Shown: positions 8,540-58,613 of the stretch, one piece after another
How the letters are laid out: every line of letters starts with the position of its first letter
Position numbering within the stretch: the stretch's first letter is position 1
Source of the DNA: Mobula hypostoma
Taxonomy: Eukaryota
Direction of reading: 5' to 3'
Length of the DNA stretch: 64,000 bases
Assembly: GCF_963921235.1 (NCBI RefSeq)
Contig: NC_086101.1
Location: forward strand, 22,134,001 to 22,198,000
Position numbers and translations under genes: made by a program
The notes under the pieces: model-generated
Seen by the model: only the letters and a program-made list of their open reading frames with translations
What the model was told of the DNA's origin: nothing
Database searches by the model: none

Positions 8540-9270
8540 GTTACCCCGGTTTTACGCAATGCCTGTCCCCACCCCATTTAGATGGGGCGTTGGCTGGTCG
8601 AGCAGAGTTTTCAAGGATCGCTGAAGTTTAGAAGACGGCAAATGAATTATTTGTTCGCGTTTTGTTTTTGTTCGCTGTTAAGGCTGGGCAGCGCTGGAGG
8701 TAAGAAATAATGTTCAGGGAATGGGAAGCGCGCTTCACGGTGATTCTCGGTGCCGCCGCAGGAGCGCTGAGGCCGAGGTGGCTCGGCATCCAGAACGGCT
8801 CGTACCTTATGGGCCCTGGAAGCTGCTGCCATCACGTTTGAGAACTTCGAGAGAAAGCCTGGTTTCTAATTCTGCGTCCACGCGTCGCCGTTTATAGTGT
8901 TGCTGTGACGCGCACCTCTCCCAAACTTCGCGTCGCGGCAACGCAAACGTAACAACTGTGATTGGTCCGCAAGTCACCCTACGCTGCAGTAGCTTCCCAG
9001 TGGGCGACTGAAGGACTGGGGAGGAATTCTGGCTGCAAAGCTTTCCATAAAGCTTTACAGACCTCCGAAATTATGGAGGACACATTTCGCACGAAAAAAG
9101 ACGCTCTCGTCTTGTTCACCCCGAGACTACCATGACCATGAAGCATTGCGCGGGCAGGTGAGTGCGCATGCGTGATATGCGCGAATTGCCGAGCGACGCA
9201 GACTCACTAACGCACAAGTATAAATACTCACTACGCGTAAGCCACTTGCGTAGTTTACGGCGTTCAGTTA
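8540..9270. promoter_or_regulatory. CpG island / probable promoter region
   Basis: Sharp CpG enrichment in non-repetitive sequence; ATTGG (reverse CCAAT) at 8961-8965; NRF1-like TGCGCATGCG at 9163-9172; contains the signal-peptide exon. Confidence 0.7.
8642..8699 (+). CDS. Exon 1 (signal peptide) of IgV-5TM receptor gene: MNYLFAFCFCSLLRLGSAG
   Basis: Hydrophobic 19-aa leader ending GSAG; strong donor GAG|GTAAGA in phase 1, matching the phase-1 IgV exons; an in-frame upstream ATG at 8582 is also possible. Confidence 0.75.
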
Positions 9271-17551: not shown

Positions 17552-17854
17552 CTAAAACGATGCAAGTTCAGGGTGCCCTTGGTTCGAATGTTTTGTTGGA
17601 GTCTGGAAACAGTGCTGATCTCCACGGTCGTGAAGTTGTGTGGGAGTTCACCAGCAGCAATGGAACCGAGTTCACCATTTTGGATGTTGGACCAAACCAC
17701 CCAGAAGTGAAACCAAACAAACATTTTAAAGATTTGATTTTTAATCTGTCCACTGGAGATTTATTATTAAGCAATTTAAAGACAAGTGACCAGGGAAATT
17801 ATACTGTCAGCATTGATGGTCAGGAGCGGAGAAAAATAGAATTGCGAATCTTTG
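17552..17854 (+). CDS. IgV-like exon copy 1 (cysteine-free V-set domain)
   Basis: Polypyrimidine + cccag acceptor; TTTG|GTGAGT donor; phase 1-1; 303 bp open; C-strand W (VVWEF), LLLSNLKTSDQGNY motif, no B/F cysteines. Confidence 0.9.
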
Positions 17855-18203
17855 GTGAGTAGCTTGTGTCACTGAGCATTTATAGTACGGTTGGATGCTG
17901 TTCAGCTTGGACAAGTTCTCATGAACAAACACAAATTGCTGCAGGAATTCTGCACATCAGACAGCATCTATGGAGAGGAATGATACTGATGAAGGGTCTC
18001 AGCTTGAAACGTTGACTGTTCATTCCTGTCCTTAACTGCAGCCTGACCCGCTGAGTTCAGGTATGTGAGTGTTACTCTGGATTTCCATAAGATATAGGAG
18101 CAGAAATAGGCCATTCAGCCCATTGAGTCTGCTCTCCCATTTCACCATGACTGACCCATTTTCCTCTCGACTCCACTCTCCTGCTTCTCCCATAACCTAC
18201 ATG

Positions 18204-20838
18204 GGAAAGAGGTGGGGGTGTGGCACTGTTGATTAGATTGGCTGCAGAAAAGGTGGACGCCATGGAGGGATTGTCTACGGAGTCTCTGTGGGTGGAGGTT
18301 AGGAACAAGAAAGGGTCAATAACTTTACTGGGTGTTTTTTATAGACCACCCAATATTAACAGGGATATAGAGGAGCAGGTAGGGAAACAGATCTTGGAAA
18401 GGTGTAATAATAACAGAGTTGTCGTGATGGGAGATTTTCATTTCCCAAATATCGATTGGCATCTCCCTAGAGCAAGGAGTTTAGATGGGGTGGAGCTTGT
18501 TAGGTGTGTTCAGGAAGGTTTCTTGATGCAATATGTAGATAGGCCTACAAGAGGAGAGGCTGTACTTGATTTGGTATTGGGAAATGAACCTGGTCAGGTG
18601 TCAGATCTCTCAGTGGGAGAGCATTTTGGAGATAGTGATCATAATTCTATCCCTTTTACAGTAGCATTGGAGAGAGATAGGAACAGACATGTTAGAAAAT
18701 TGTTTAATTGGAGTAAGGGGAATTTTGAGGCTACCAGGCAGGAAATTGGAGGCTTAAATTGGAAACAGACGTTCTCAGGGAAAAGTATGGAAGAAATGTG
18801 GCAAATATTCAGGGGATATTTGTGTGGAGTTCTGCATAGGTACGTTCCAATGAGACAGGGAAGTTATGGTAGGGTACGAGAACTGTGGTGTACAAAGGCT
18901 GTAATAAATCTAGTCAAGAAGAAAAGAAAAGCTTACAAAACGTTCAGAGAGCTAGGTAATGTTAGAGATCTAGAAGATTATGAGGCTAATAGGTAGGAGC
19001 TTAAGAAAGAAATTAGGAGAGCCAGAAGGGGCCATGAGAAGGCCTTGGCGGGCAGGATTAAAGAAAATCCCAAGGTATTCTACAAGTATGTGAAGAGCAA
19101 GAGGATAAGACGTGAAAGAATAGGACCTATCAAGTGTGACAGTGGGAAAGTGTGTATGGAACTGGAGGAAATAGCAGAGGTACTTAATGAATACTTTACT
19201 TCAGTATTCACTGTGGAAAAGGATCTTGGTGATTGTAGTGCTGACTTGCAGCAGACTGAAAAGCTTGAGCATGTAGATATTAAGAAAGAGGATGTGCTGG
19301 AGCTTTTGGAAAGCATCAAGTTGGATAAGTCGCCGGGACCGGATGAGATGTACCCCAGGCTGCTCTGGGAGGTGAGGGAGGAAATTGCTGAGCCTCTGGT
19401 GATGATATTTGCTTCATCAATGGGGATGGGAGAGGTTCCGGAGGATTGGACGGTTTTGGATGTTGTTCCTTTATTCAAGAAAGGGAGTAGAGATAGCCCA
19501 GGAAATTATAGACCAGTGAGTCTTACCTCAGTGGTTGGTAAGTTGATGGAGAAGATCCTGAGAGGCAGGATTTATGAACATTTGGAGAGGTATAATATGA
19601 TTAGGAGTAGTCAGCATGGTTTTGTCAAGGGCAGGTCGTGCCTTGCGAGCCTGATTGAATTTTTTGAGGACGTGACTGAACACATTGATGGAGGAAGAGC
19701 AGTAGATGTAGTGTATATGGATTTCAGCAAGGCATTTGATAAGGTAGCCTACGCCAGGCTTATTGAGAAAGTAAGGAGGCATGGGATCCAAGGGGACATT
19801 GCTTTGTGGATCCAGAACTGGCTTGCCCACAGAAGGCAAAGAGTGGTTGTGGGCGGGTCATATTCTGCATGGAGGTTGGTCACCAGTGGAGTGCCTCAGG
19901 GATCTGTTCTGGATGACCTGGATGAGGAAGTGGAGGGATGGGTTAGTAAGTTTGCTGATGACACAAAGGTTGGAGATGTTGTAGATAGTGTGGAGGGCTG
20001 TCAGAGGTTACAGTGGGACATTGATAGGATGCAAAACTGGGCTAAGAAGTGGCAGATGGAGTTCAACCCAGATAAATGTGAAGTGGTTCATTTTGGTTGG
20101 TCAAATATGATGGCAGAATATAAAATGGTAAGACTCTTGGCAGTGTGGAGGATCAGAGGGATCTTGGGGTCCGAGTCCATAGGACGCTCAAAGCAGCTGT
20201 GCAGGGTGACTCTGTGGTTAAGAAGACATACGGTGTATTGGCCTTCATCAATCGTGGAATTGAATTTAGGAGCCAAGAGGTAATGTTGCAGCTATATAGG
20301 ACCCTGGTCAGACCCCACTTGGAGTACTGAGCTCAGTTCCAGTCGCCTCACTATAGGAAGGATGTGGAAGCCATAGCAAGGGTGCAGAGGAGATTTACAA
20401 GGATGTTCCCTGGATTGGGGAGCATTCCTTATGAGAATAGGTTGAGTGAAATCGGACTTTTCTCCTTGGAGCGACGGAGGATGAGAGGTGACCTGATAGA
20501 GGAGTATAAGATGATGAGAGGCATTGATCGTGTGCATAGTCAGAGGCTTTTTCCCATGGCTGAAATGGTTGCCACAAGAGGGCATAGGTTTAAGGTACTG
20601 GGAAGTAAGTACAGAGGAGATGTCAGAGGTAAGTTTTTTACTCAGAGAGTGGTGAGTGCATGGAATGGGCTGCCAGCAATGTTGGTGGAGGCGGATATGA
20701 TAGGGTCTTTTAAGAGACTTTTAGATAGTTACATGGAGCTTAGTAAAATAGAGGGCTAGTAATTTCTAAGGTAAGGGCATGTTCAGTACAACTCTGTGGG
20801 CCGAAGGGCCTGCATTGTGCTGTAGGTTTTCCATGTTT
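18204..20838 (+). mobile_element. CR1 LINE ORF2 (APE tail + RT), 5'-truncated
   Basis: GVFYRPPN, MGDF, GDSDHN, DKSPGPD, QHGFVKG, DFSKAFDKV, GVPQGSVL, KFADDTK; splits host sequence ctacatg|ctaatcaagaac that is intact in copies 2 and 3. Confidence 0.92.
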
Positions 20839-20855
20839 CTAATCAAGAACCTATC

Positions 20856-22611
20856 TTCTCCATTTTGTAAATGTCCATTGTAATTTCCATCCATATATTT
20901 AAAGTTGGGCTCTCCTGAGATAACCATTTTCTGGTAAGGGTCTTTTTACCAGCCACCAGCAGTACATTCATTAAATATTTATATCTCTTTTCAACCATTC
21001 TTGAGGTATATACCAAAATATATGGTCTTACTCTCATTTATCTGTTAGTATATCATTGAAATTTGCAGAATATAGCTTAATCAATCTACTCCCTGAACAA
21101 ATAAGAACCAAGAAAAGTGAATTTTCAAAAAAGGGTAACAAAGGTGTGGTTCCAAGGCTGGGGTCTCTAGATGACCCTGGGTTGGGCTAGAAGAAAAGTC
21201 TAGCCGTGGGGGATAGCCCCACCTACATGTGGGTTGAGGGCCCCTACTGCAGTACCTATAAAAGTAAGTTTAAAAAAAACGATGTCCATTACACAGAAAT
21301 GATTTCCTGTGTATTCCTCCCATGTATATATTCTCATTTAGGCGGGGAAAAAGGAATGAATAAATGAATTTTAAAAATTGAGTAATATAAAATCCACGTT
21401 ATAACACTATTTCTCGAGATGGGTATCTCACCGTCTATTTTTGCTTCTGTTTAGTTTATCAGCACTTTTAAAATTAGCCAAACCTTATGGCTCTTCTGGA
21501 GGAGGTGAGGGCTGCCCTCGGAGAACTGACAGTCTTCTCCTAAAATCCTTCTCTTGTCCTGTTCCTGTCCCCTGCTTTCTAGGTTCTCTTACTATTTCCC
21601 AAGCAGTTCGGGATAACTGCTCAGCCAGACTTTCCCTTGGTTTGACCACGCTAATAGACAGTCCTCTGTTATTCATGTCTGTAGTTGCCTCCTCCACCAT
21701 CTGGTACAGTTGCATCCCTTCTTGGTAAAATACCCCCAGTTTAGCAGGGTATGGGATTTGGAATTTAATCTTTTCTTGCTTTAATATTCGTTTTGCTTCG
21801 GAATATTCTTTCCGTTTCTGTAGGACCGCCAGGGGGGTAATCATGATCGAAGTATGTTAACTTCCCCTTCCAAAATACCCTCTTCTTACCCCAGGCCCTT
21901 CGTAGAATCTCCGCCTTGCTCTTGAATCGAAGGAATCTAAGTACCATGGAGCGCGGTTTACTTTGTCTCCGGGAGGCCGCTGGATGAGTGAATTTCAATC
22001 TCTGTAGTCTGAGGAATCTCCAGCGCTTCCCACAGCAGCTTGTCTACAAAGTCCGTCTTCGACAATCCCTGCGCTCCTTCGGGAACATTATAAATCCTGA
22101 TATTTTTCCGTCACGGTCTTCCCTCCTGGTCAAGCAATTTACTTTCCTGTTGATTTAATATTTTTATTGTCTTACTTTTAGTATCTGCTCCACATTTTGC
22201 ATGCGATCTTCCATCTTCTCAATTTGAGTCTCTGCCACCGCTATTTTCTCATTGACGTTGGCGAGCTCTGACTGGATATCATTGAGTTGTTGTTTTATAT
22301 CTTTTTGGACTTCCCTTATCTCTTCCAGAATCCTTATCATATTTGCCGCTTGGACTGCACTAGGCCCAGCGTCAGCATCGCCGCCACGGGCACGTGTAGG
22401 AGAGCCGCACGCTGTACCTCTCTCTTCCATAGGCTCCGCAGTGGTGCTTTTTTTATCTCCATTCTTTCTCCCCATTCTTGCCCCCCCCCTTATCAATTCA
22501 GATATTTTCGAAAGATCTTATATTTGATGGATTAACGGGCCAAAATATGCGTTTTTCCAGAGACGCTGTTGATTTAAGCTGCCATTCTGAGCAATGATGT
22601 CACTGGAACTC
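20856..22611 (-). mobile_element. L1-clade LINE: ORF1 remnant plus short ORF2 C-terminal piece
   Basis: Coiled coil (22164-22496), GRSRRKNIRI linker, PRSMVLRFLRFKSK, KRKEYSEAKRILKQEKIKFQIPYPAKL; ORF2 tail AGKKTLTRKWLSQESPTLNIW. Confidence 0.8.
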
Positions 22612-23807
22612 CAGTATTAGCCTGCACTTTTATACCTTCTTCCAAAGTGTGTGCCCAAACACTTCCCGACACAGTATTCAATCTGCCACCTCTTTGCCCA
22701 TTCTTCTAATCTAAGGCCTCCTGCAGCCTCTCTGCTTCCTCAACACTACCTACCCCTCCATCCATCTTCATATCATCCACAAACTTGGTCATAAAATGAT
22801 CAATTTCATCATCCAAATCGTTGACATGCAATGTAGAAGAATCGGTCCCAACACAGACCCCTGTGGAATACCACTAGTCACCAGCATCCAATCCAAAAAA
22901 AGGCTCCCTTTATTCCCACACATAGCCTCCTGCCACTCAGCCAATGCTAGAACCTTTCCTGTGATACCCTGGGCTCTTAACTTGTTTAGCAGCTTTACGT
23001 GTGACATCTTGTCAAAGGCCTTCTGAAAATTCAAGTACACAACATCCACCAATTCTCTTCATCTATCCTACTTATTATTCAAAGAATTCCAACATATTTG
23101 TCATGCCAGATTTTCCCTTAAGGAGGCCATGCTGACTTTAGCCTATTTTGTCGTGTGCCTTCAAATTCCCTGAAACTACATCCCCAACAATCGAATTCAA
23201 CACTTTCCCAGCCACTCAGGTCAGGGAAACTGGCCTATAATTTCCTTTCTTCTGCCTCCCTCCCTGTTTGAAGAGTGGAGTGACTTTTCAATTTTCCTTC
23301 CTCCAAATCCATGCCAGAATCGATTTCTTGAAAGTTCATTACTAATGCCTCCATAATCTCTTCAGCTACCTCTTTTTGAACCCTGGGGTATTGTTTGGCA
23401 GGACCAGGTGACTTTAGACATTTCTGTTTCCCAAACACCATCTCCCTTGTAATAGCAACTGCACTCACTTCTGTCCCTTGATACTCTTGAACTTCTGGCA
23501 TACTGGTGTCTTCCCCAGTGAAGACTGATAGAAAATACTTGCTCGGTTCGACCACCTTTCCCTTGTCCCGCATTATTTTCCAATGGTCCAATCCTACTAT
23601 TGCCTCCTTTTATATATCTGAAAATATATTGGTATTTTAGGCTAGCTTAGCTACATATTTCATCGTTCCCCCCCCCCACAGCAAAACTGTTTTTTTCAGT
23701 TGCCTTCTGTTTAGTTATATATATCACCTTGCCTTGAACCCTGCCCACATTTCACCCTTTTCAAGGATGCAACATAACTGATTTTTTTTTCCTTCCTTAA
23801 TGCCCAG

Positions 23808-24113
23808 CAGAGATGAAGCAAGTTGAGGGTGCCCTTGGTTCAAATGTTTCGTTGGAGTCTGGAAGCAGTGCCAATCTCCATGGTCGTGAAGTTGTGTGGA
23901 AGTTCACTAGCAACAATGGAACTGAGTTCACCATTTTGGATGTTGGACCAAACCACCCAGAAGTGAAACCAAACAAATATTTTGAAGATCGTTTGATTTT
24001 TAATCTGTCCACTGGAGATTTATTATTAAGCAATTTAAAGACAAGTGACCAGGGAAATTATACTATCAGCGTTAATGGTCGAAAGCTGAGGAAAATAGAT
24101 TTGCGAATCTTTG
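23808..24113 (+). CDS. IgV-like exon copy 2
   Basis: NAGNAG acceptor cccag|cag; GTGAGT donor; phase 1-1; open frame MKQVEGALG...KIDLRIF. Confidence 0.9.
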
Positions 24114-26303
24114 GTGAGTAGCTTGTGTCACTGAGCATTTATATTAGGATTGGATGCTGTTCAGCTTGGACAAGTTCTCATGAACAGACACAAATTGCTG
24201 CAGGAATTCTGCACATCAGACAGCATCTATGGAGAGGAATGATACTGATGAAGGGTCTCAGATTGAAACGTCGCCTGTTCATTCCTCTCCATAAATGCAG
24301 CCTGACCTGCTGAGTTCCTCCAGCACCAGTGTATGTGAGTGTTACTCTGGATTTCCATAAGACATAGGAGCAGAAATAGGCCATTCAGCCCATTGAGTCT
24401 GCTCTCCCATTTCACCATGACTGACCCATTTCCCTCTCGACTCCATTCTTCTGATTCTCCCATAACCTACATGCTCCAACTAATCAAGAACCTATCAACC
24501 TACGCCTTAATTACATCCAGTGACCTGGCCTGCACAGCTGCCAGTGTCAAGAAATTCCACAGATTCACCTCCCTCTGGGAAAAGAGCTTCCCCCTCTCTC
24601 TGTTCTAAATGGATGTCCTTCTATCTTGAGGCTGTGTCTTCTGGTCATAGGTTCCCCCACCAAAGTAAACAGCCTCTTCACATCTGCACTATCTCGGCCT
24701 TTCAGTATTCAATGAGATTCCCCCACCACCCCCAGTCCTTCTCAATTCCAGCGAGTACAGGCCCTGAGCCTTCAATCGCTACTCTTTCCCTCCTGGAATC
24801 ATTCTCGTGAACCTACTCCAATCCCTGTCCAGTATCAGCATGTTCTTTCTTGGATAAGGTGCCCAAAACTGCTCACACCACTCTGAGGCCTCACCCTTGC
24901 CTTATACAGGCCTCAGCATTACATCTTTGTGTTTATATTGTAGTCCTCTTGAAATGAATGCTAACATTTCATTTGCCTTCCTCACAACTGATTCAACCTG
25001 CATATTAACCTTTTGGGAATCCTACATGAGGATTTCCAAATCCCATTGCACCTCAGATTTTTGAATCTTCTTCCCATTTAGAAAGTAGTCTACACTTTTA
25101 TTCCTTCTACCAAAGTGTGTGCCCATACACATCCCGACACAGTATTCAATCTGCCGCCTCTTTGCCCATTCTTCTAATCTGTCTAACTCCTCCTGCAGCC
25201 TCCCTGCTTCCTCAACACTACCTACCCCTCCATCTATCTTCATATCATCAGCAAACTTGGTCGCAAAAATGGTCAATTCCATTATCCGAATTGTTGACAT
25301 ACAATGTAGAAGAATCGGTCCCAACACAGACCCCTATGGAACACCACTAGTCACCAGCAGCCAATCCAAAAAAAGTTTCCCTTTATTCCCACACTTAGCC
25401 TCCTGCCACTCAGCCAATGCTAGAACCTTTCCTGTGATACCCTGGGCGCTTATCTTGTTAAGCAGCTTTATGTGTGACATCTTGTCAAAGGCCTTCTGAA
25501 AATCCAAGTACACAACATCCACCAATTCTCTTCGTCTATCCTACTTATTATTCAAAGAATTCCAACATATTTGTCATGCCAGCTTTTCTCTTAAGGAAGC
25601 TATGGTGACTTTAGCCTATTTTGTCAAGTGCCTCCAAGTTCCCCGAAATTACATCCTCGACAATCGAATCCAACACTTTCCCAGCCACTCAGGTCAGGCT
25701 AACTGGCCTATAATTTCCTTCCTGCTGCCTGCCTCCCTCCCTGTTTGAAGGGTGGAGTGACTTTTCAATTTTCCTGTCCTCCAAATCCATGCCAGAATCG
25801 ATTTCTTGAAAGTTCATTACTAACGCCTCCATAATCTCTTCAGCTACCTCTTTTCGAACCCTGGGGTGTTGTCTGGCAGGACCAAATGACTTTAGACCTT
25901 TCTGTTTCCCAAACACCATCTCCCTTGTAATAGCAACTGCACTCACTTTTACCCCTTGATACTCTTGAACTTCTGGCATACTGGTGTCTTCCCCAGTGAA
26001 GACTGATAGAAAATACTCACTCGGTTCGTCCACCTTTCCCTTGTCCCGCATTACTATCTCTCCAGCGTCATTTTCCAATGGTCCAATCCTACTATTGCCT
26101 CCTTTTATATATCTGAAAATATATTGGTATTTTAGGCCAGCTTAGCTACATATTTCATCTTCCCCCGCCCCCCCCAGCAAAACTTTTTTTTAGTTGCCTT
26201 CTGTTTAGTTATGTATATCACCTTGCCTTGAACCCTGCCCACATTTCACCCTTTTCAAGGATGCAACATAACTGATTTTTTTTCCTTCCTTAATGCCCAA
26301 CAG

Positions 26304-26606
26304 AGATGAAGCGAGTTCAGGGTGTACTTGGTGAAAATGTTTTGTTGGAGTCTGGAAACAGTGCTGATCTCCACGGTCATGAAGTTGTGTGGAAGTTCAC
26401 TAGCAACAATGGAACCGAGTTCACCATTTTGGATGTTGGACCAAACCACCCAGAAGAGAAACCAAACAAATATTTTAAAGATCGTTTAAATTTTAATCTG
26501 TCCACTGGAGATTTATTATTAAGCAATTTAAAGACAAGTGACCAGGGAAATTATACTATCAGCGTTAATGGTCTGAAGCTGAGAAAAATAGATTTGCGAA
26601 TCTTTG
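26304..26606 (+). CDS. IgV-like exon copy 3
   Basis: cccaacag acceptor; GTGAGT donor; phase 1-1; open frame MKRVQGVLG...KIDLRIF. Confidence 0.9.
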
Positions 26607-26849
26607 GTGAGTAGCTTGTGTCACTGAGCGTTTATATTAGGATTGGATGCTGTTCAGCTTGGACAAGTTCTCATGAACAGACACAAATTGCTGCAGGAAT
26701 TCTGCACATCAGACAGCATCTATGGAGAGGAATGATACTGATGAAGGGTCTCAGGTTGAAATGTCGCCTGTTCATTCCTCTCTATAAATGCAGCCTGACC
26801 TGCTGAGTTCCTCCAGCACCAGTGTATGTGAGTGTTACTCTGGATTTCC

Positions 26850-29490
26850 ATAAGACATAGGAGCAGAAATAGGCCATTCAGCCTGTTGAGTCTGCTCTCC
26901 CATTTCCCTCTCGACTCCATTCTTCTGCTTCTCCCATAACCTACATGCTCCAACTAATCAAGAACCTATCAACCTACTCCTTAAATGCATCCAGTGACCT
27001 GGGCTGCACAGCTGCCAGTGGCAAGAAATTCCACAGATTCACCTCCCTCTGGGAAAAGAGCTTCCCCCTCTCTCTGTTCTAAATGGATGTCCTTCTTGAG
27101 GCTGTTTCTTCTGGTCATAGGTTCCCCCACCAAAGTAAACAGCCTCTTCACATCTGCACTATCTCGGCCTTTCAGTATTCAATGAGATTCCCCCACCACC
27201 CCCAGTCCTTCTCAATTCCAGCGAGTACAGGCCCTGAGCCTTCAATCGCCACTCTTTCCCTCCTGGAATCATTCTCGTGAACCTACTCCAATCCCTGTCC
27301 AGTATCAGCATGTTCTTTCTTGGATAAGGTGCCCAAAACTGCTCACACCACTCTGAGGCCTCACCCTTGCCTTATACAGGCCTCAGCATTACATCTTTGT
27401 GTTTATATTGTAGTCCTCTTGAAATGAATGCTAACATTTCATTTGCCTTCCTCACAACTGATTCAACCTGCATATTAACCTTTTGGGAATCTTACATGAG
27501 GATTCCCAAATCCCATTGCACCTCAGATTTTTGAATCTTCTTCCCATTTAGAAAGTAGTCTACACTTTTATTCCTTCTACCAAAGTGTGTGCCCATACAC
27601 ATCCCGACACAGTATTCAATCTGCCGCCTCTTTGCCCATTCTTCTAATCTGTCTAACTCCTCCTGCAGCCTCCCTGCTTCCTCAACACTACCTACCCCTC
27701 CATCTATCTTCATATCATCAGCAAACTTGGTCGCAAAGATGATCAATTCCATTATCCGAATTGTTGACATACAATGTAGAAGAATCGGTCCCAACACAGA
27801 CCCCTATGGAACACCACTAGTCACCAGCAGCCAATCCAAAAAAAGTTTCCCTTTATTCCCACACTTAGCCTCCTGCCACTCAGCCAATGCTAGAACCTTT
27901 CCTGTGATACCCTGGGCGCTTATCTTGTTTAGCAGCTTTACGTGTGACATCTTGTCAAAGGCCTTCTGAAAATCCAAGTACACAACATCCACCAATTCTC
28001 TTCGTCTATCCTACTTATTATTCAAAGAATTCCAACAGATTTGTCATGCCAGTTTTTCCCTTAAGGAAGCTATGGTGACTTTAGCCTATTTTGTCAAGTG
28101 CCTCCAAGTTCCCCGAAATTACATCCCCGACAATCGAATCTAACACTTTCCCAGCCACTCAGGTCAGGCGAACTGGCCTATATTTTCCTTTATTCTGTCT
28201 TCCTCCCTTCTTGAAGAGTAGAGCGACATTTGTAATTTCCAGTCCTCCAAATCCGTGCCAGAATCTATTGTTTCTTGAAAGGTCATTAATTGTGCCTCTA
28301 TAATCACCAGCTACCTCTTTTCGAACCCTGGGGTATTATCTGGGAGGTCTGGGTGACTTTAGTCTTTTCTGTTTCCCAAACACCATCTCCCTTGTAATAG
28401 CAACTGCACTCACTTTTGCCCCTTGACACTCTTGAACTTCCGGCATTGTCTTCCACAGTGTAGACTGATACAAAATGCTCACTCGGTTCATCGACCATTT
28501 CCTTGTCCTACATTACTATCTCTCCAGTGTCATTTTCCAGTGGTCTAATATCTACTCTTGCCTCTCTTTATATATCTGAAAATATATCGGTATTTTTAGC
28601 TAGCTTACCAACATATTTCATCTTCCCCCTCCCAATGTTCTTTTAAGTTGCCTTCTGTTTAAATATCTCTCAATTCTCGAACTTTCCCTCTAATTTTTGC
28701 TCTACTAGATGCTATTTCTGTTGCTTTAATGTTGGCTTTGACTTCACTTGTCAGCCACAGTTGCATCTTTCTACCTTAAGAACACTTCCTCTTCTTTGGG
28801 ATGTATCTATCCTGTGTCTTCCGAATTGCTCCTGGAAACTCCAGCCTTTGCTGCTCTGCCATCATCCCTGCTAGTGTTCCCTTCCAAAGAACTTTGCCCA
28901 GCTCCTCTCTCATGCCTCTATAATTCTCTTCACTCCACTATAATACTGATATATCATATTTGAGCTTCTCCCTCCTAAATTGCAGGATGAATTCTATCAT
29001 ATTATGATCTGTTTCCTAAGGGTTCTTTTACGTTCAGCTCCCTAATCATATCCAGTACATTACACAACACCTAATCCAGAATTGCTGATCCCCCAGAGGC
29101 TTAACCACAAGCTGCTCCAAAAACCCATCTTGGAGGCATTCCACAAATTCCCTCTCTTGGGATCCAGAGTCAACTTGATTTTCCCAATCTATCTGCATAT
29201 TGAAATCTCTTGTGACAAAAGTAACATTACCTTTTTGACATGCTTTTTCTATCTCCTACTGTAATTTGTACACCTTGTTTTGGCTATAGTTCGAAATCCC
29301 GTAAGTAACTCCCATCAGGGTCTTCTTACCCTTGCAGTTTCTTCACTCTACCTACAAAGATTCTACATCTTCTGGTCGTATGTCACCTCCTTCTAAAGAT
29401 GTGATTTAATTTCTTACCAGCAGAGCCACTCCTCCTCCTCTGCCTACATGCCTGTCCTTTCAAGAGACTGTGTATCTTTAGGTATTAAGC
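26850..29490 (-). mobile_element. Old decayed CR1 (the duplicated unit ends inside it; continues into the APE region after copy 3)
   Basis: KFADD, DFQKAFDK and GDF-like motifs in broken minus ORFs; partial copies at 22613-23715 and 24355-26210. Confidence 0.8.
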
Positions 29491-39037: not shown

Positions 39038-39154
39038 GCCCTTCCGCTGATGACATTCCGATGATTGTTCTGTCGATCTCAGCCCTGGTGTTTTCTTCAG
39101 TTTATCTTATTGCAGTTTTTCCTCTGAACATCTGGAAGTGTAAATCAAACAGAG
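39038..39154 (+). CDS. TM1 exon: GPSADDIPMIVLSISALVFSSVYLIAVFPLNIWKCKSNR
   Basis: gtttaattgcag acceptor; AGAG|GTATTC donor; phase 1-1; about 23-aa hydrophobic run followed by basic residues. Confidence 0.8.
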
Positions 39155-41464: not shown

Positions 41465-41566
41465 AATTACCAAAGTACAAATGGTGGAAGTATGTCCTGT
41501 ATCTATGTAACATCCTGCAACTTCCTGTCATCCTCGCTGCGTTCAGTTGCTCGATTCATTTTAAAG
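41465..41566 (+). CDS. TM2 exon: LPKYKWWKYVLYLCNILQLPVILAAFSCSIHFK
   Basis: ccttttctccatag acceptor; AAAG|GTTTGT donor; phase 1-1; basic loop then hydrophobic helix. Confidence 0.8.
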
Positions 41567-43632: not shown

Positions 43633-43752
43633 ATTCTTGTTTACTAAATGTGGCTACAGCATGCATTGCAGTTCTATTGTTTACTTTGCCTGTACCATTT
43701 ATCACTCAAGTACCTAAATGCCGGCGAATTCGCAGATTCAGCACCAGTATCG
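43633..43752 (+). CDS. TM3 exon: SCLLNVATACIAVLLFTLPVPFITQVPKCRRIRRFSTSI
   Basis: Branch-like CTAAC at about 43604, tgtttgctctag acceptor, ATCG|GTGAGA donor; phase 1-1; hydrophobic helix then an Arg-rich loop. Confidence 0.8.
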
Positions 43753-43839
43753 GTGAGAAACAGCTCATCAGTTTTATATCAGTTTTACAGTCGTAGTGAT
43801 ATCCAACTCTCTTATCATCATGTCCTCTGTCTCTGACAG

Positions 43840-43923
43840 TTATTTCAGTTACTCAGCTTGCACTGCACGTCATCGTGGTTGGCACCTCAATTGCTTTCTT
43901 CATCAAAGACATCCATCAGGAAA
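43840..43923 (+). CDS. TM4 exon: ISVTQLALHVIVVGTSIAFFIKDIHQE
   Basis: tcctctgtctctgacag acceptor after an 87-bp intron; GAAA|GTGAGT donor; phase 1-1. Confidence 0.8.
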
Positions 43924-52663: not shown

Positions 52664-52756
52664 AACAAAGATATACCTTCCACACTTGGAATGTGCTCAT
52701 CGCCTCAGTGGTCGAATGTACAGTCAGCTTCATCGTGGCCTCAATGTTCCATTACT
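52664..52756 (+). CDS. TM5 exon: QRYTFHTWNVLIASVVECTVSFIVASMFHY
   Basis: ctttgctgttctatattttcag acceptor; TACT|GTAAGT donor; phase 1-1. Confidence 0.8.
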
Positions 52757-55046
52757 GTAAGTATCAAAATGATCAGAACCCTTCAGATCACAAACCAGAT
52801 GCTGGAAATCAAAGCAGCACACACAAAATGCTGGAGGAACTCAGTCATAATGAAAACTTTCCCCAGGGTCCCACTGCCCCTTCAGGTTGGGGTTATGGGG
52901 AAACTTCCAGCACGTTGTTCCTTCCCTGTCCCTGACTGGCTGCTGTCGTTCAGGAGGAGCTCTGGCCTGTATTTTCCCTGCTGCTACTGGAAGCTCCTCA
53001 TGGAGTCATTGGCGTTTTTGTCATAAATAGACTACAAGACGTAGGAGCAGTTTAGGCTATTCAGCCCATTGAGTCTGCTCTGCCACTCCATCAGGGCTAA
53101 TTTACTATCTCTCTCAACCCCATTCTCCTGCCTTTCTCAGTAAAATACCACAATTACACACACATTAAGCAAGCATAGGAAAAGTTAATCTGCGTAAAAT
53201 AACAATATTACACACTAGTCTAACACTTCCCTAGTCATTTCTTGCCAATCAAGCGTTGCAATAGAGTTGTATCCCATCTCACCCTGATATCAGGGGATCA
53301 CTTTTGCCTTTTGGGATTAGAGTATGATTTTCATTAAGGTCCTGCCTGACCTCATCAGAATTCCACAGTGAAGAAAGACACAGTATCAATCAAAAGTATT
53401 GTCAAAACACCCAAAATGTTTTTATTGCCTAGATCCTCTTTATGGACTTCGCTGAGTATTTTCTATTTATAGTGCAGAGGGCTCTTGGTTCTATTCTGTG
53501 AGACGGTGGTAAAACTAATTTTTTGGCCCGATAAGCCTGAATCCTGAAACAGGGCAAGGGGAAAATTAAAATCTGGTGAATTAAATAAAAGAATCCAACG
53601 TAAATACTGATGAATATAAAACTGGAGGATTTCACCGTCTTTCAAGAAAAAAATCTGCCGTCCTTACGGGAGACTGCTGGAAATCTGCAGGAATGCGGAG
53701 CTCCAGAATTTCTTGCTGCGCCTGTCCCCGGATGCTGCGTGGGCCTCAAACGTGAATTACTTCTGTCTCCACAGAGGCTTCCTGACCTGCAACTGCCCTA
53801 AGCCATTCCTATTTTTATTGCACCTTTTAAAATAATTTCAAATTGGTACTTCAGTAATATAGTTTTAGTTTTGATGTTTCAGAGTGATGGGGGACGGACT
53901 GTGGTGTTAAGGTTTCCTGGGATAATGTGGACGAGGCTTGATTTATCCTGTTTTATCACTGTATCCACAGCTTTGCACAGCCGGATTTGCCTTTGGGTCC
54001 GGAAAGGGTACAGCTGGATGACTGGTGAGTGCAGGCGGAGTTTTCCATTCCTTCCCACCCCCCCCCCACCTTGACCTCCCCCAGGGAATATCTGGCCTGT
54101 GCAATTCCCCTCCCTCCCCCCCCCACCCTACCCCAGTGAATATCCGGCCTGTGCCATTCCGGATGGTCAAATTCTTGGGGTAAGTGAAGGTGAAGTCCAG
54201 GGGCTTTTGTCATTTCTCTTTTGGAGATTCCGTGTTGGGGAGCGAATTCAAGAGGTTTTCCATCTCGTAGAGTCGGATCAATCACTGGAGGGAAGGGGTG
54301 GGTGAAACCCGGTGCCGTGTCCATCAGGGGAACATCTGGGAGGAGGGCAGGGACGGAGGATTCCAGAAAGTGCCAGATAAATGAGCCGAAGGGCACTTTG
54401 CACCTGTGGTCTCTCCTGTGTTGGGACTTGGTGTCACTCACATTCCCGGGGTAGGAAGGTGAAAGGAACCTTGCCCATTGGGAGCAGATATGGGAAACGA
54501 GTTGCTGTCTGATTGTCTGCCCCTTCATTTTAAGTATTTGGACATTCAGCACACAGTCCACAATTTTCAATCATTCAGCTGGGAGCAGGCAATGGGAATG
54601 TGATGGCAGACCCTGTCTTGGGGAAAGCCATGATCTTTAAAGGCAAGTAACAAGAAGGCACATTTCCTGGCCTGGCTCCCAGTGCAGGACGGGAGCCTGT
54701 GTCCCGATTCTGCGCTCTCTGAGTGCAGGAAATTCCATCAGTCAGAAGAATGGGGGAGCAAAATTTCCTGTTTACTCCATGTTAAACACCTCCAGGAAGT
54801 TACTGTGGGAGCCTGTGCATAAAGTAACTCTTCCATTGATTGTTAACCCTTTCCCACTGTGTGACCCGGGACCTTCCCCAGTCTGTAAACTGGAGATCCT
54901 GTCTGCACTCTCTATTAAGTCACTAAGAAGGGGTCAAATTCTCAAGAGTAAATGAGAGAGGATTGAAACTCTTTTAGTGACTGTTGGTGAGACAAGTCAT
55001 TGAAATATTGAATATCCATAGTTATTGATTATTTTCTTTATTATAG

Positions 55047-55084
55047 GCAGAAATAAAAGCAACACTAATGAAAAAGGACCGCAG
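55047..55084 (+). CDS. Cytoplasmic tail exon 1: (C)RNKSNTNEKGPQ
   Basis: ttattttctttattatag acceptor; CAG|GTATTT donor; phase 1 to 0, bridging TM5 to the terminal exon. Confidence 0.7.
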
Positions 55085-58544: not shown

Positions 58545-58613
58545 AATGCTGAAGAACTGCAGAGTTTCACAACCTTTCCCACAGAAGATGCTGGATATGT
58601 ACATTCCGATTAG
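58545..58613 (+). CDS. Terminal coding exon: NAEELQSFTTFPTEDAGYVHSD*
   Basis: tttcactttctgtgttttcag acceptor; phase 0 matches the preceding exon; ends in TAG. Confidence 0.7.
   Translation, partial: NAEELQSFTTFPTEDAGYVHSD

Follow-up and report, generated by a model that had tools for sequence, protein, structure and literature searches.

A stretch of 64,000 nucleotides (nt) from Mobula hypostoma (RefSeq assembly GCF_963921235.1, contig NC_086101.1, positions 22,134,001 to 22,198,000 of the forward strand; hereafter the window, with coordinates counted from its first letter) contains the gene LOC134346677, labelled "uncharacterized protein" in RefSeq and identified here through a search of 1.8 billion representative proteins followed by cluster look-ups. 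In our judgement this gene probably encodes a serial ectodomain of three immunoglobulin (Ig) variable-type (V) domains, the third of which (V3) is a cassette, produced by recent duplication of a V exon in an elasmobranch gene for a protein with five transmembrane (TM) helices. RefSeq isoform X1 (P0165, 567 aa) matches 12 exons spanning 8582-58613 letter for letter, arranged as a leader, V1, V2, V3, five TM helices with one exon each and three small tail exons. Exons 2-10, that is, V1 through exon 10, are all phase 1-1, so that every new V copy would be read in frame. The product would be a membrane protein in type I orientation, with a signal peptide, cysteine-free V-set domains in tandem, five TM helices and a short tail. 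Its default mRNA would join V1-V2-V3 to the first TM exon (TM1) without a linker, giving a longer, three-domain ectodomain, and skipping of V3 would allow a two-domain form to be made as well.

Serial splicing of the V exons

The exons on which this reading depends are the following:
17552..17854, + strand: V1 exon, 303 nt, phase 1-1, cysteine-free V-set domain (Pfam, splice sites, RNA contig)
23811..24113, + strand: V2 exon, 303 nt, phase 1-1, with a NAGNAG (cagcag) acceptor (RNA junctions; P0165 residues 141-241)
26304..26606, + strand: V3 exon, 303 nt, phase 1-1, cassette (RNA junctions, RefSeq isoforms)
39038..39154, + strand: TM1 exon, 117 nt, phase 1-1

A tblastn search with V1 found exactly three V-like exons in the window. 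As the initial annotation had described from the letters alone, and as Pfam and RNA agree, all three are open, paralogous and phase 1-1, each with a polypyrimidine tract and AG acceptor upstream and an identical GTGAGT donor downstream. The 306 bp given there for V2 are corrected to 303, since that count took the upstream AG of the NAGNAG while the RNA junctions and RefSeq (P0165 and P0160) place the acceptor at 23810|23811, the downstream AG of cagcag. V3 does not have the upstream AG of the V2 tandem acceptor (caacag vs cagcag; V2 site 23805-23812); use of the upstream V2 acceptor would add one codon, and the RNA shows the downstream site alone.

The exon copies are 84-93% identical and differ pairwise at 13-19 codons. 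Pfam V-set (PF07686) scores for V1, V2 and V3 were 27.8, 26.1 and 29.8 bits (gathering cutoff 26), and the joint score for the three domains was 70.8 bits. None of the three contains a cysteine: the classical B-strand and F-strand cysteines of the V-set are absent throughout, and their usual positions read LLESG and YTVS/YTIS. An AlphaFold2 (AF2) model predicts three beta-sandwich domains at a predicted local distance difference test score (pLDDT) of 75-88, the last strand of one domain being continuous with the first of the domain that follows.

Splicing was followed in assembled Logan contigs from four public RNA runs of one study (runs X1-X4, a numbering distinct from that of the RefSeq isoforms), which were mapped to 23600-26800 for the V junctions and then to TM1. 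Such contigs omit rare isoforms, their depths are non-quantitative, the tissues are unstated, and the results are those among the matches listed. Words of the V1 exon were present, and its intron flanks absent, in all four runs. The junction of V1 with V2 was read indirectly, since the distance between these exons lies just above the 6,000-nt mapping limit and the V1 part of the contig landed on V3. A 185-nt contig found in both run X2 and run X3 matches V2 perfectly over 107 nt from 23810/23811, and its preceding 78 nt aligned to the end of V3 with seven mismatches; seven is exactly the number of differences between the ends of V1 and V3, and the four letters checked among those listed for the 78-nt stretch are those of V1. 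The contig through the V1 end passes into V2 unbranched. Contigs in the same two runs connect 24113 to 26304 (GT..AG) with 0 mismatches, joining V2 to V3. In run X2, the 30 letters preceding position 39038 (...GCTGAGAAAAATAG...) are the end of V3, so that V3 is joined to TM1; in run X3 the letters before 39038 in a 1071-nt contig read ...GCTGAGGAAAATAG..., the end of V2, so that V2 is joined to TM1 with V3 skipped. The two ends are distinguished by the base 23 nt upstream of the donor, which differs between V2 and V3. The 1071-nt contig begins 29-30 nt before the junction, as expected past a de Bruijn branch between the V2-V3 and V2-TM1 paths.

The V1-V2, V2-V3, V3-TM1 and V2-TM1 junctions therefore indicate serial use of the V exons with V3 as a cassette: this phase 1-1 exon is both included and skipped in RNA, and its inclusion was seen in both runs expressing LOC134346677. 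Three-V and V3-skipped mRNAs both exist, and correspond to RefSeq isoforms X1 and X3 (P0161, two V domains, V3 absent); isoform X2 (P0160) carries all three V domains without TM3 and TM4. No leader-V2, leader-V3 or V1-V3 junction was found among the RNA contig matches listed, no skipping of V1 or V2 was observed in the RNA contigs, and a query running from the V3 end to TM2 found no further splice forms among proteins called on public assemblies. Of the possibilities raised by the initial annotation, a multi-domain stalk is thus borne out by the contigs, and the proposal of one-, two- and three-domain isoforms holds for the three-V and two-V forms in RNA and RefSeq, one-V forms being annotated in relatives only. 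The idea that V1, V2 and V3 serve as alternative, Dscam-like heads was not supported, the exons being spliced to each other in series.

Contigs of runs X4 and X3 attach unrelated letters (GTGGTAGTGAGTGGAATACACGAGGCAACC) at offset 117 of V2 and V3 (23928 and 26421), representing either a graph chimera or a paralogue with a common 3' two-thirds of the V exon.

Origin and divergence of the V copies

Two further features record how the array was formed:
22793..28654, + strand: tandem segmental duplication, unit 2.47-2.49 kb (repeat families D1-D11)
18204..22792, + strand: long interspersed nuclear element (LINE), with endonuclease and reverse transcriptase (RT) open reading frames, and other sequence breaking the V1-V2 spacer (repeat-family boundaries; Pfam Exo_endo_phos_2 and RVT_1)

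The duplicated unit pairs a V exon with a spacer that contains LINE RT debris in antisense orientation; the duplication has two full units followed by a third spacer, after which neither tblastn nor the repeat search found a fourth V exon in the window. Units 2 and 3 are 96.2% identical, and the introns of the V2 and V3 units have diverged by 1.4-5.6%. The V1 unit has the same flanks as the other two and is split by the 4.6-kb insertion, with repeat families D2/D7 ending at about 18203 and D1 picking up at 22793, which leaves a V1-V2 spacing of 6.26 kb as against 2.49 kb. Within the spacer, the segments 24242-24455, 24884-24990 and 25419-25525 rise to word depths in the thousands in each of the four RNA runs and represent high-copy fragments of transposable elements (TEs) that are expressed, not LOC134346677.

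Of 62 variable sites in the flanks, 50 separate V1 from V2 and V3, giving the tree (V1,(V2,V3)). In a tree of V-domain proteins the V1 domains of M. hypostoma and M. birostris are orthologous, and V2 and V3 of M. hypostoma join the single V2 of M. birostris; the second duplication therefore probably took place in the M. hypostoma lineage alone, as judged from sequence comparison and with the M. birostris count taken from annotated V domains. An ancestral V exon would have duplicated before the split of the two Mobula species to give V1 and V2, and a later, recent duplication of the 2.5-kb LINE-debris unit, most likely by unequal crossing-over, would have given V2 and V3.

The V2 and V3 exons differ at 20 of 303 nt (6.6%), compared with 2.7% in the 300 nt flanking them on either side and 3.4% in both introns, an excess over the surroundings with a Fisher p of about 0.007-0.01. 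Synonymous divergence (dS) between V2 and V3 is also raised, at 0.12 vs 0.014-0.056 in the introns. The ratio of nonsynonymous to synonymous divergence (dN/dS, Nei-Gojobori) was 0.48 for V2-V3, 0.64 for V1-V2 and 1.28 for V1-V3, none of them significantly different from 1 (binomial p = 0.11 and 0.45; small counts). Variable sites in the exon split 14/10/9, and sites at which V1 equals V3 number 10 in the exon vs 1 in the flanks; positive selection thus accounts for the pattern no better than exchange between copies does. The replacements concentrate in strand A, in the B-C and C''-D regions and in the F-G loop, and the C-C' and E-F cores are invariant in all three. Taken together, the sequence comparison makes a weak case for diversifying selection on the V exons, and the Nei-Gojobori counts are too small to distinguish positive selection from neutrality.

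Four other readings of the array, and one broader one, have to be set against serial use with a cassette V3. A Dscam-like array, in which each mRNA would take one of V1, V2 or V3 and so place distinct heads on the five-TM base, is consistent with paralogous, symmetric phase 1-1 exons that differ at many codons and can be spliced in frame in any subset, with the one-V isoforms annotated in relatives (P0006, P0151 and P0154) and with a run (X1) that contains V1 without V2 or V3. We nevertheless regard it as very unlikely, as the V1-V2 and V2-V3 junctions were each assembled in two runs, the contig through the V1 end is unbranched, RefSeq isoforms X1 and X2 carry all three V domains, and no leader-V2, leader-V3 or V1-V3 junction is among the matches listed; moreover, the one-V forms of relatives retain the first V domain, which amounts to simple cassette skipping, and the TE-filled introns of 2-6 kb give no sign of a selector mechanism, for which no dedicated search was made. 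That the assembly might instead have collapsed or expanded a repeat at V2 and V3, or set two alleles one after the other, is suggested by units that are 96% identical, since tandem repeats of such size are prone to assembly error. This is next to inconceivable in view of the V2- and V3-specific sequence present with 0 mismatches in RNA contigs of independent runs and of a V2-V3 splice junction, which two alleles of one exon could not produce; the triplication, which the initial annotation had flagged as a possible artefact, is real.

The remaining alternatives accept serial splicing and concern what the copies do. V3, and perhaps V2, may be a young neutral passenger that is included through its copied splice sites, adds nothing and is heading for loss or skipping. 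The slight divergence of its introns, its skipping in one run and in RefSeq isoform X3, dN/dS values indistinguishable from neutrality and the variation of V copy number among close relatives all fit this account, which we hold to be unlikely but worth retaining. Against it, V3 is included in both runs expressing the gene, and two or three tandem V domains also occur in Hemitrygon, Hypanus, Pristis, Heptranchias and a Mobula paralogue; their presence in independent lineages suggests that multi-V ectodomains have been tolerated or favoured repeatedly. A somewhat less probable possibility is serial functional diversification, whereby selection, or gene conversion with paralogues, would maintain the V domains and drive them apart, so that each would offer a binding surface of its own and inclusion of V3 would alter ligand specificity and not just length. 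The excess of exon over flank and intron divergence, the 14/10/9 split of exon sites where the flanks set V1 apart, the grouping of replacements around invariant cores and the V1-V3 ratio above 1 speak for it; the ratios below 1 for the other two pairs, the lack of significance with such small counts, and a raised dS, for which gene conversion or a mosaic origin is a better match than positive selection, speak against it. Broader still, and more doubtful, is the proposal of a fast-evolving five-pass receptor family, here seen only in elasmobranchs, in which lineage-specific gain of V exons, exchange between copies and regulated skipping would jointly tune ligand specificity and ectodomain length, a germline-encoded, splice-modulated form of diversification with no bony-vertebrate counterpart. 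Were it true, run X1, with V1 in the absence of V2, V3 and TM1, would hint at tissue-specific forms.

Serial use of the three V exons with V3 as a cassette is thus the preferred reading, and several points weigh against it. Its RNA support consists of assembled contigs rather than reads, with the attendant loss of rare forms and non-quantitative depth. Run X1 contains 100% of the sampled V1 words and no intron words, has zero depth over V2 and V3 and gave nothing on TM1; it may hold a V1-only or truncated form, another V1-containing form, or an expressed, near-identical paralogous V1 exon. The M. birostris count of two V domains comes from annotation. Finally, function is inferred throughout, and the TM module has neither a Pfam family nor a structural relative: the product may be an adhesion or immune-type receptor, and an extra V domain would be expected to change the reach or valency of the ectodomain.

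The five-TM gene and its elasmobranch relatives

The remaining exons of LOC134346677 are the following:
8582..8699, + strand: exon 1, with the start codon, 20 extra N-terminal residues and the signal peptide (MNYLFAFCFCSLLRLGSAG); ends in phase 1
41465..41566, + strand: TM2 exon, 102 nt, phase 1-1 (the RNA end after 39154, AATTACCAAAGTAC..., is the TM2 start; P0165)
43633..43752, + strand: TM3 exon, 120 nt, phase 1-1, skipped jointly with TM4 in RefSeq isoform X2 (P0160)
43840..43923, + strand: TM4 exon, 84 nt, phase 1-1
52664..52756, + strand: TM5 exon, 93 nt, phase 1-1
53971..54024, + strand: small cytoplasmic exon, 54 nt, phase 1-1
55047..55084, + strand: cytoplasmic exon, 38 nt
58545..58613, + strand: last coding exon, with the stop codon

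Exon 1 encodes exactly residues 1-39 of P0165 and ends in the donor GAG|gtaaga. With the annotated start, 20 residues (MGRWLVEQSFQGSLKFRRRQ) precede the second Met, where a typical signal peptide starts (MNYLFAFCFCSLL...), and stingray orthologues begin at the equivalent of this Met. Hydropathy gives five TM segments; the AF2 model of the whole protein has five helices in the TM region with TM3 broken in two, and a model of the TM region alone has six. Joint skipping of TM3 and TM4 (43633-43923; both phase 1-1) leaves three TM helices with the predicted topology of the tail unchanged, and M. birostris isoform X3 (P0162) likewise omits both. The 54-nt tail exon (SLHSRICLWVRKGYSWMT) is another optional cassette: P0159 and P0152 do not have it, and it is missing from some M. 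birostris isoforms and from Hypanus.

Between V3 and TM1, the statement of the initial annotation that no C-type Ig exon precedes TM1 was upheld, as tblastn with the C2 domains of three relatives matched the V exons alone; the interval (26.6-39.0 kb), described there as almost entirely TE, contains LINE endonuclease/RT and Tc1/mariner remnants.

A jackhmmer search with the TM module of the window returned 42 matches with E values from 1e-113 to 1e-4 (among 165 proteins, comprising 150 representatives and cluster members), and all 18 of the five-TM-module representatives whose source was queried come from sharks and rays. LOC134346677 thereby fits an unnamed family of the form V(n)-[C2]-5TM, detected here only in elasmobranchs and characterized by a homologous five-TM module after one or more cysteine-free V domains. 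In sharks and sawfish (P0153, P0005 and P0157) the order is V(+V)+C2+5TM, with a C2/I-set domain between V and TM1; in stingrays and devil rays (P0165, P0152 and P0163) the C2 domain has been lost, and no relic exon is found in this window. Rays and sharks other than Mobula have one to three V domains. M. birostris has two plus a one-V isoform (X4), Hypanus two near-identical copies plus a one-V isoform (X3), Hemitrygon three, and Pristis two with a C2 domain plus a one-V isoform. In the V-domain tree these copies group by lineage (Pristis, Hypanus, the three of Hemitrygon, Heptranchias), and V-exon number has thus been repeatedly gained, or the copies homogenised by gene conversion. Several Hypanus and M. 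birostris paralogues (P0010, P0021, P0009 and P0156) have 7-12 TM segments with V domains before and between the TM blocks; these models are probably read-through fusions of adjacent family genes, which would put the family in a cluster on one chromosome.

RefSeq has automatically named relatives "CEACAM1-like", "HEPACAM-like" or uncharacterized. Two of them (P0005 and P0009) exceed the cutoff of the Pfam Receptor_2B4 profile, at 31-38 bits vs 21, and V3 of the window reaches 13 bits against the same cutoff of 21 (E 0.11); with the SLAM profile, which gives E 0.05 for the gene, this makes for weak Pfam matches at E 0.05-0.11. The five-TM module matched no Pfam family, and Foldseek with the TM model found nothing below E 0.2, a weak negative given a model pLDDT of 62. 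The V exon array is already contained in the RefSeq isoform models and is without description in the literature searched, in which nothing relevant was found on families with IgV domains and five TM helices in cartilaginous fish. This sizeable and unstudied shark and ray family, with CD2/SLAM-like V domains on a five-pass base, is of greater interest than the array itself and may merit study as a source of candidate immune or adhesion receptors in cartilaginous fishes.

Comparison with known systems

CD47 has a signal peptide, an IgV domain, five TM helices on separate exons and a short tail with alternative small exons, and is to our knowledge the only well-known protein with such a V-plus-five-pass build. 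LOC134346677 likewise combines a signal peptide and N-terminal IgV domains with five TM helices, each encoded by an exon of its own, and a short cytoplasmic tail that includes alternative small exons. Unlike CD47, however, its V domains contain no cysteines and can form neither the Ig disulfide nor the disulfide that links the CD47 IgV domain to a loop, and the elasmobranch family has one to three V domains, with an additional C2 domain in sharks. Neither the window protein nor 18 family members matched Pfam PF04549 (CD47) or PF08204 (V-set_CD47), and no CD47 chain appeared in the PDB profile search or the Foldseek search; a feature search of a protein atlas (ESM-atlas) listed the CD47/OPG166 cluster among its weak leads, with a score of 0.60. 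The likeness to CD47 is therefore one of build, with no homology detected in these searches.

The V domains of CD2/SLAM proteins and the N domains of CEACAMs resemble V1-V3 in being V-set domains without the inter-sheet disulfide. Those proteins are single-pass or anchored through glycosylphosphatidylinositol, with domains in the order V-C2(-V-C2), whereas LOC134346677 has no C2 exon and carries tandem V domains on a five-pass base. Serial V-type domains are also found in pIgR, JAML, CD4/LAG-3 and IGSF2/3, which gave the best Foldseek matches to the ectodomain model, a likeness of fold only, at 12-20% identity; these are single-pass proteins whose domains are old and diverged, in contrast to the recent copies of LOC134346677. 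Rabbit pIgR and many genes of the Ig superfamily (IgSF) skip Ig exons, with phase 1-1 preserving the frame.

Drosophila Dscam1, at exons 4, 6 and 9, likewise contains tandem arrays of paralogous exons for the same Ig domain within one gene. There, exactly one exon per cluster is used from dozens of copies, whereas LOC134346677 has three, which are joined to each other in the mRNA. The array is an ordinary young IgSF exon duplication with cassette splicing, and illustrates textbook IgSF growth, in which a symmetric phase 1-1 exon is copied together with its splice sites and is immediately in frame. The duplication is young enough that its unit and TE scaffold remain visible, and RNA shows the new copy to be both used and skippable.

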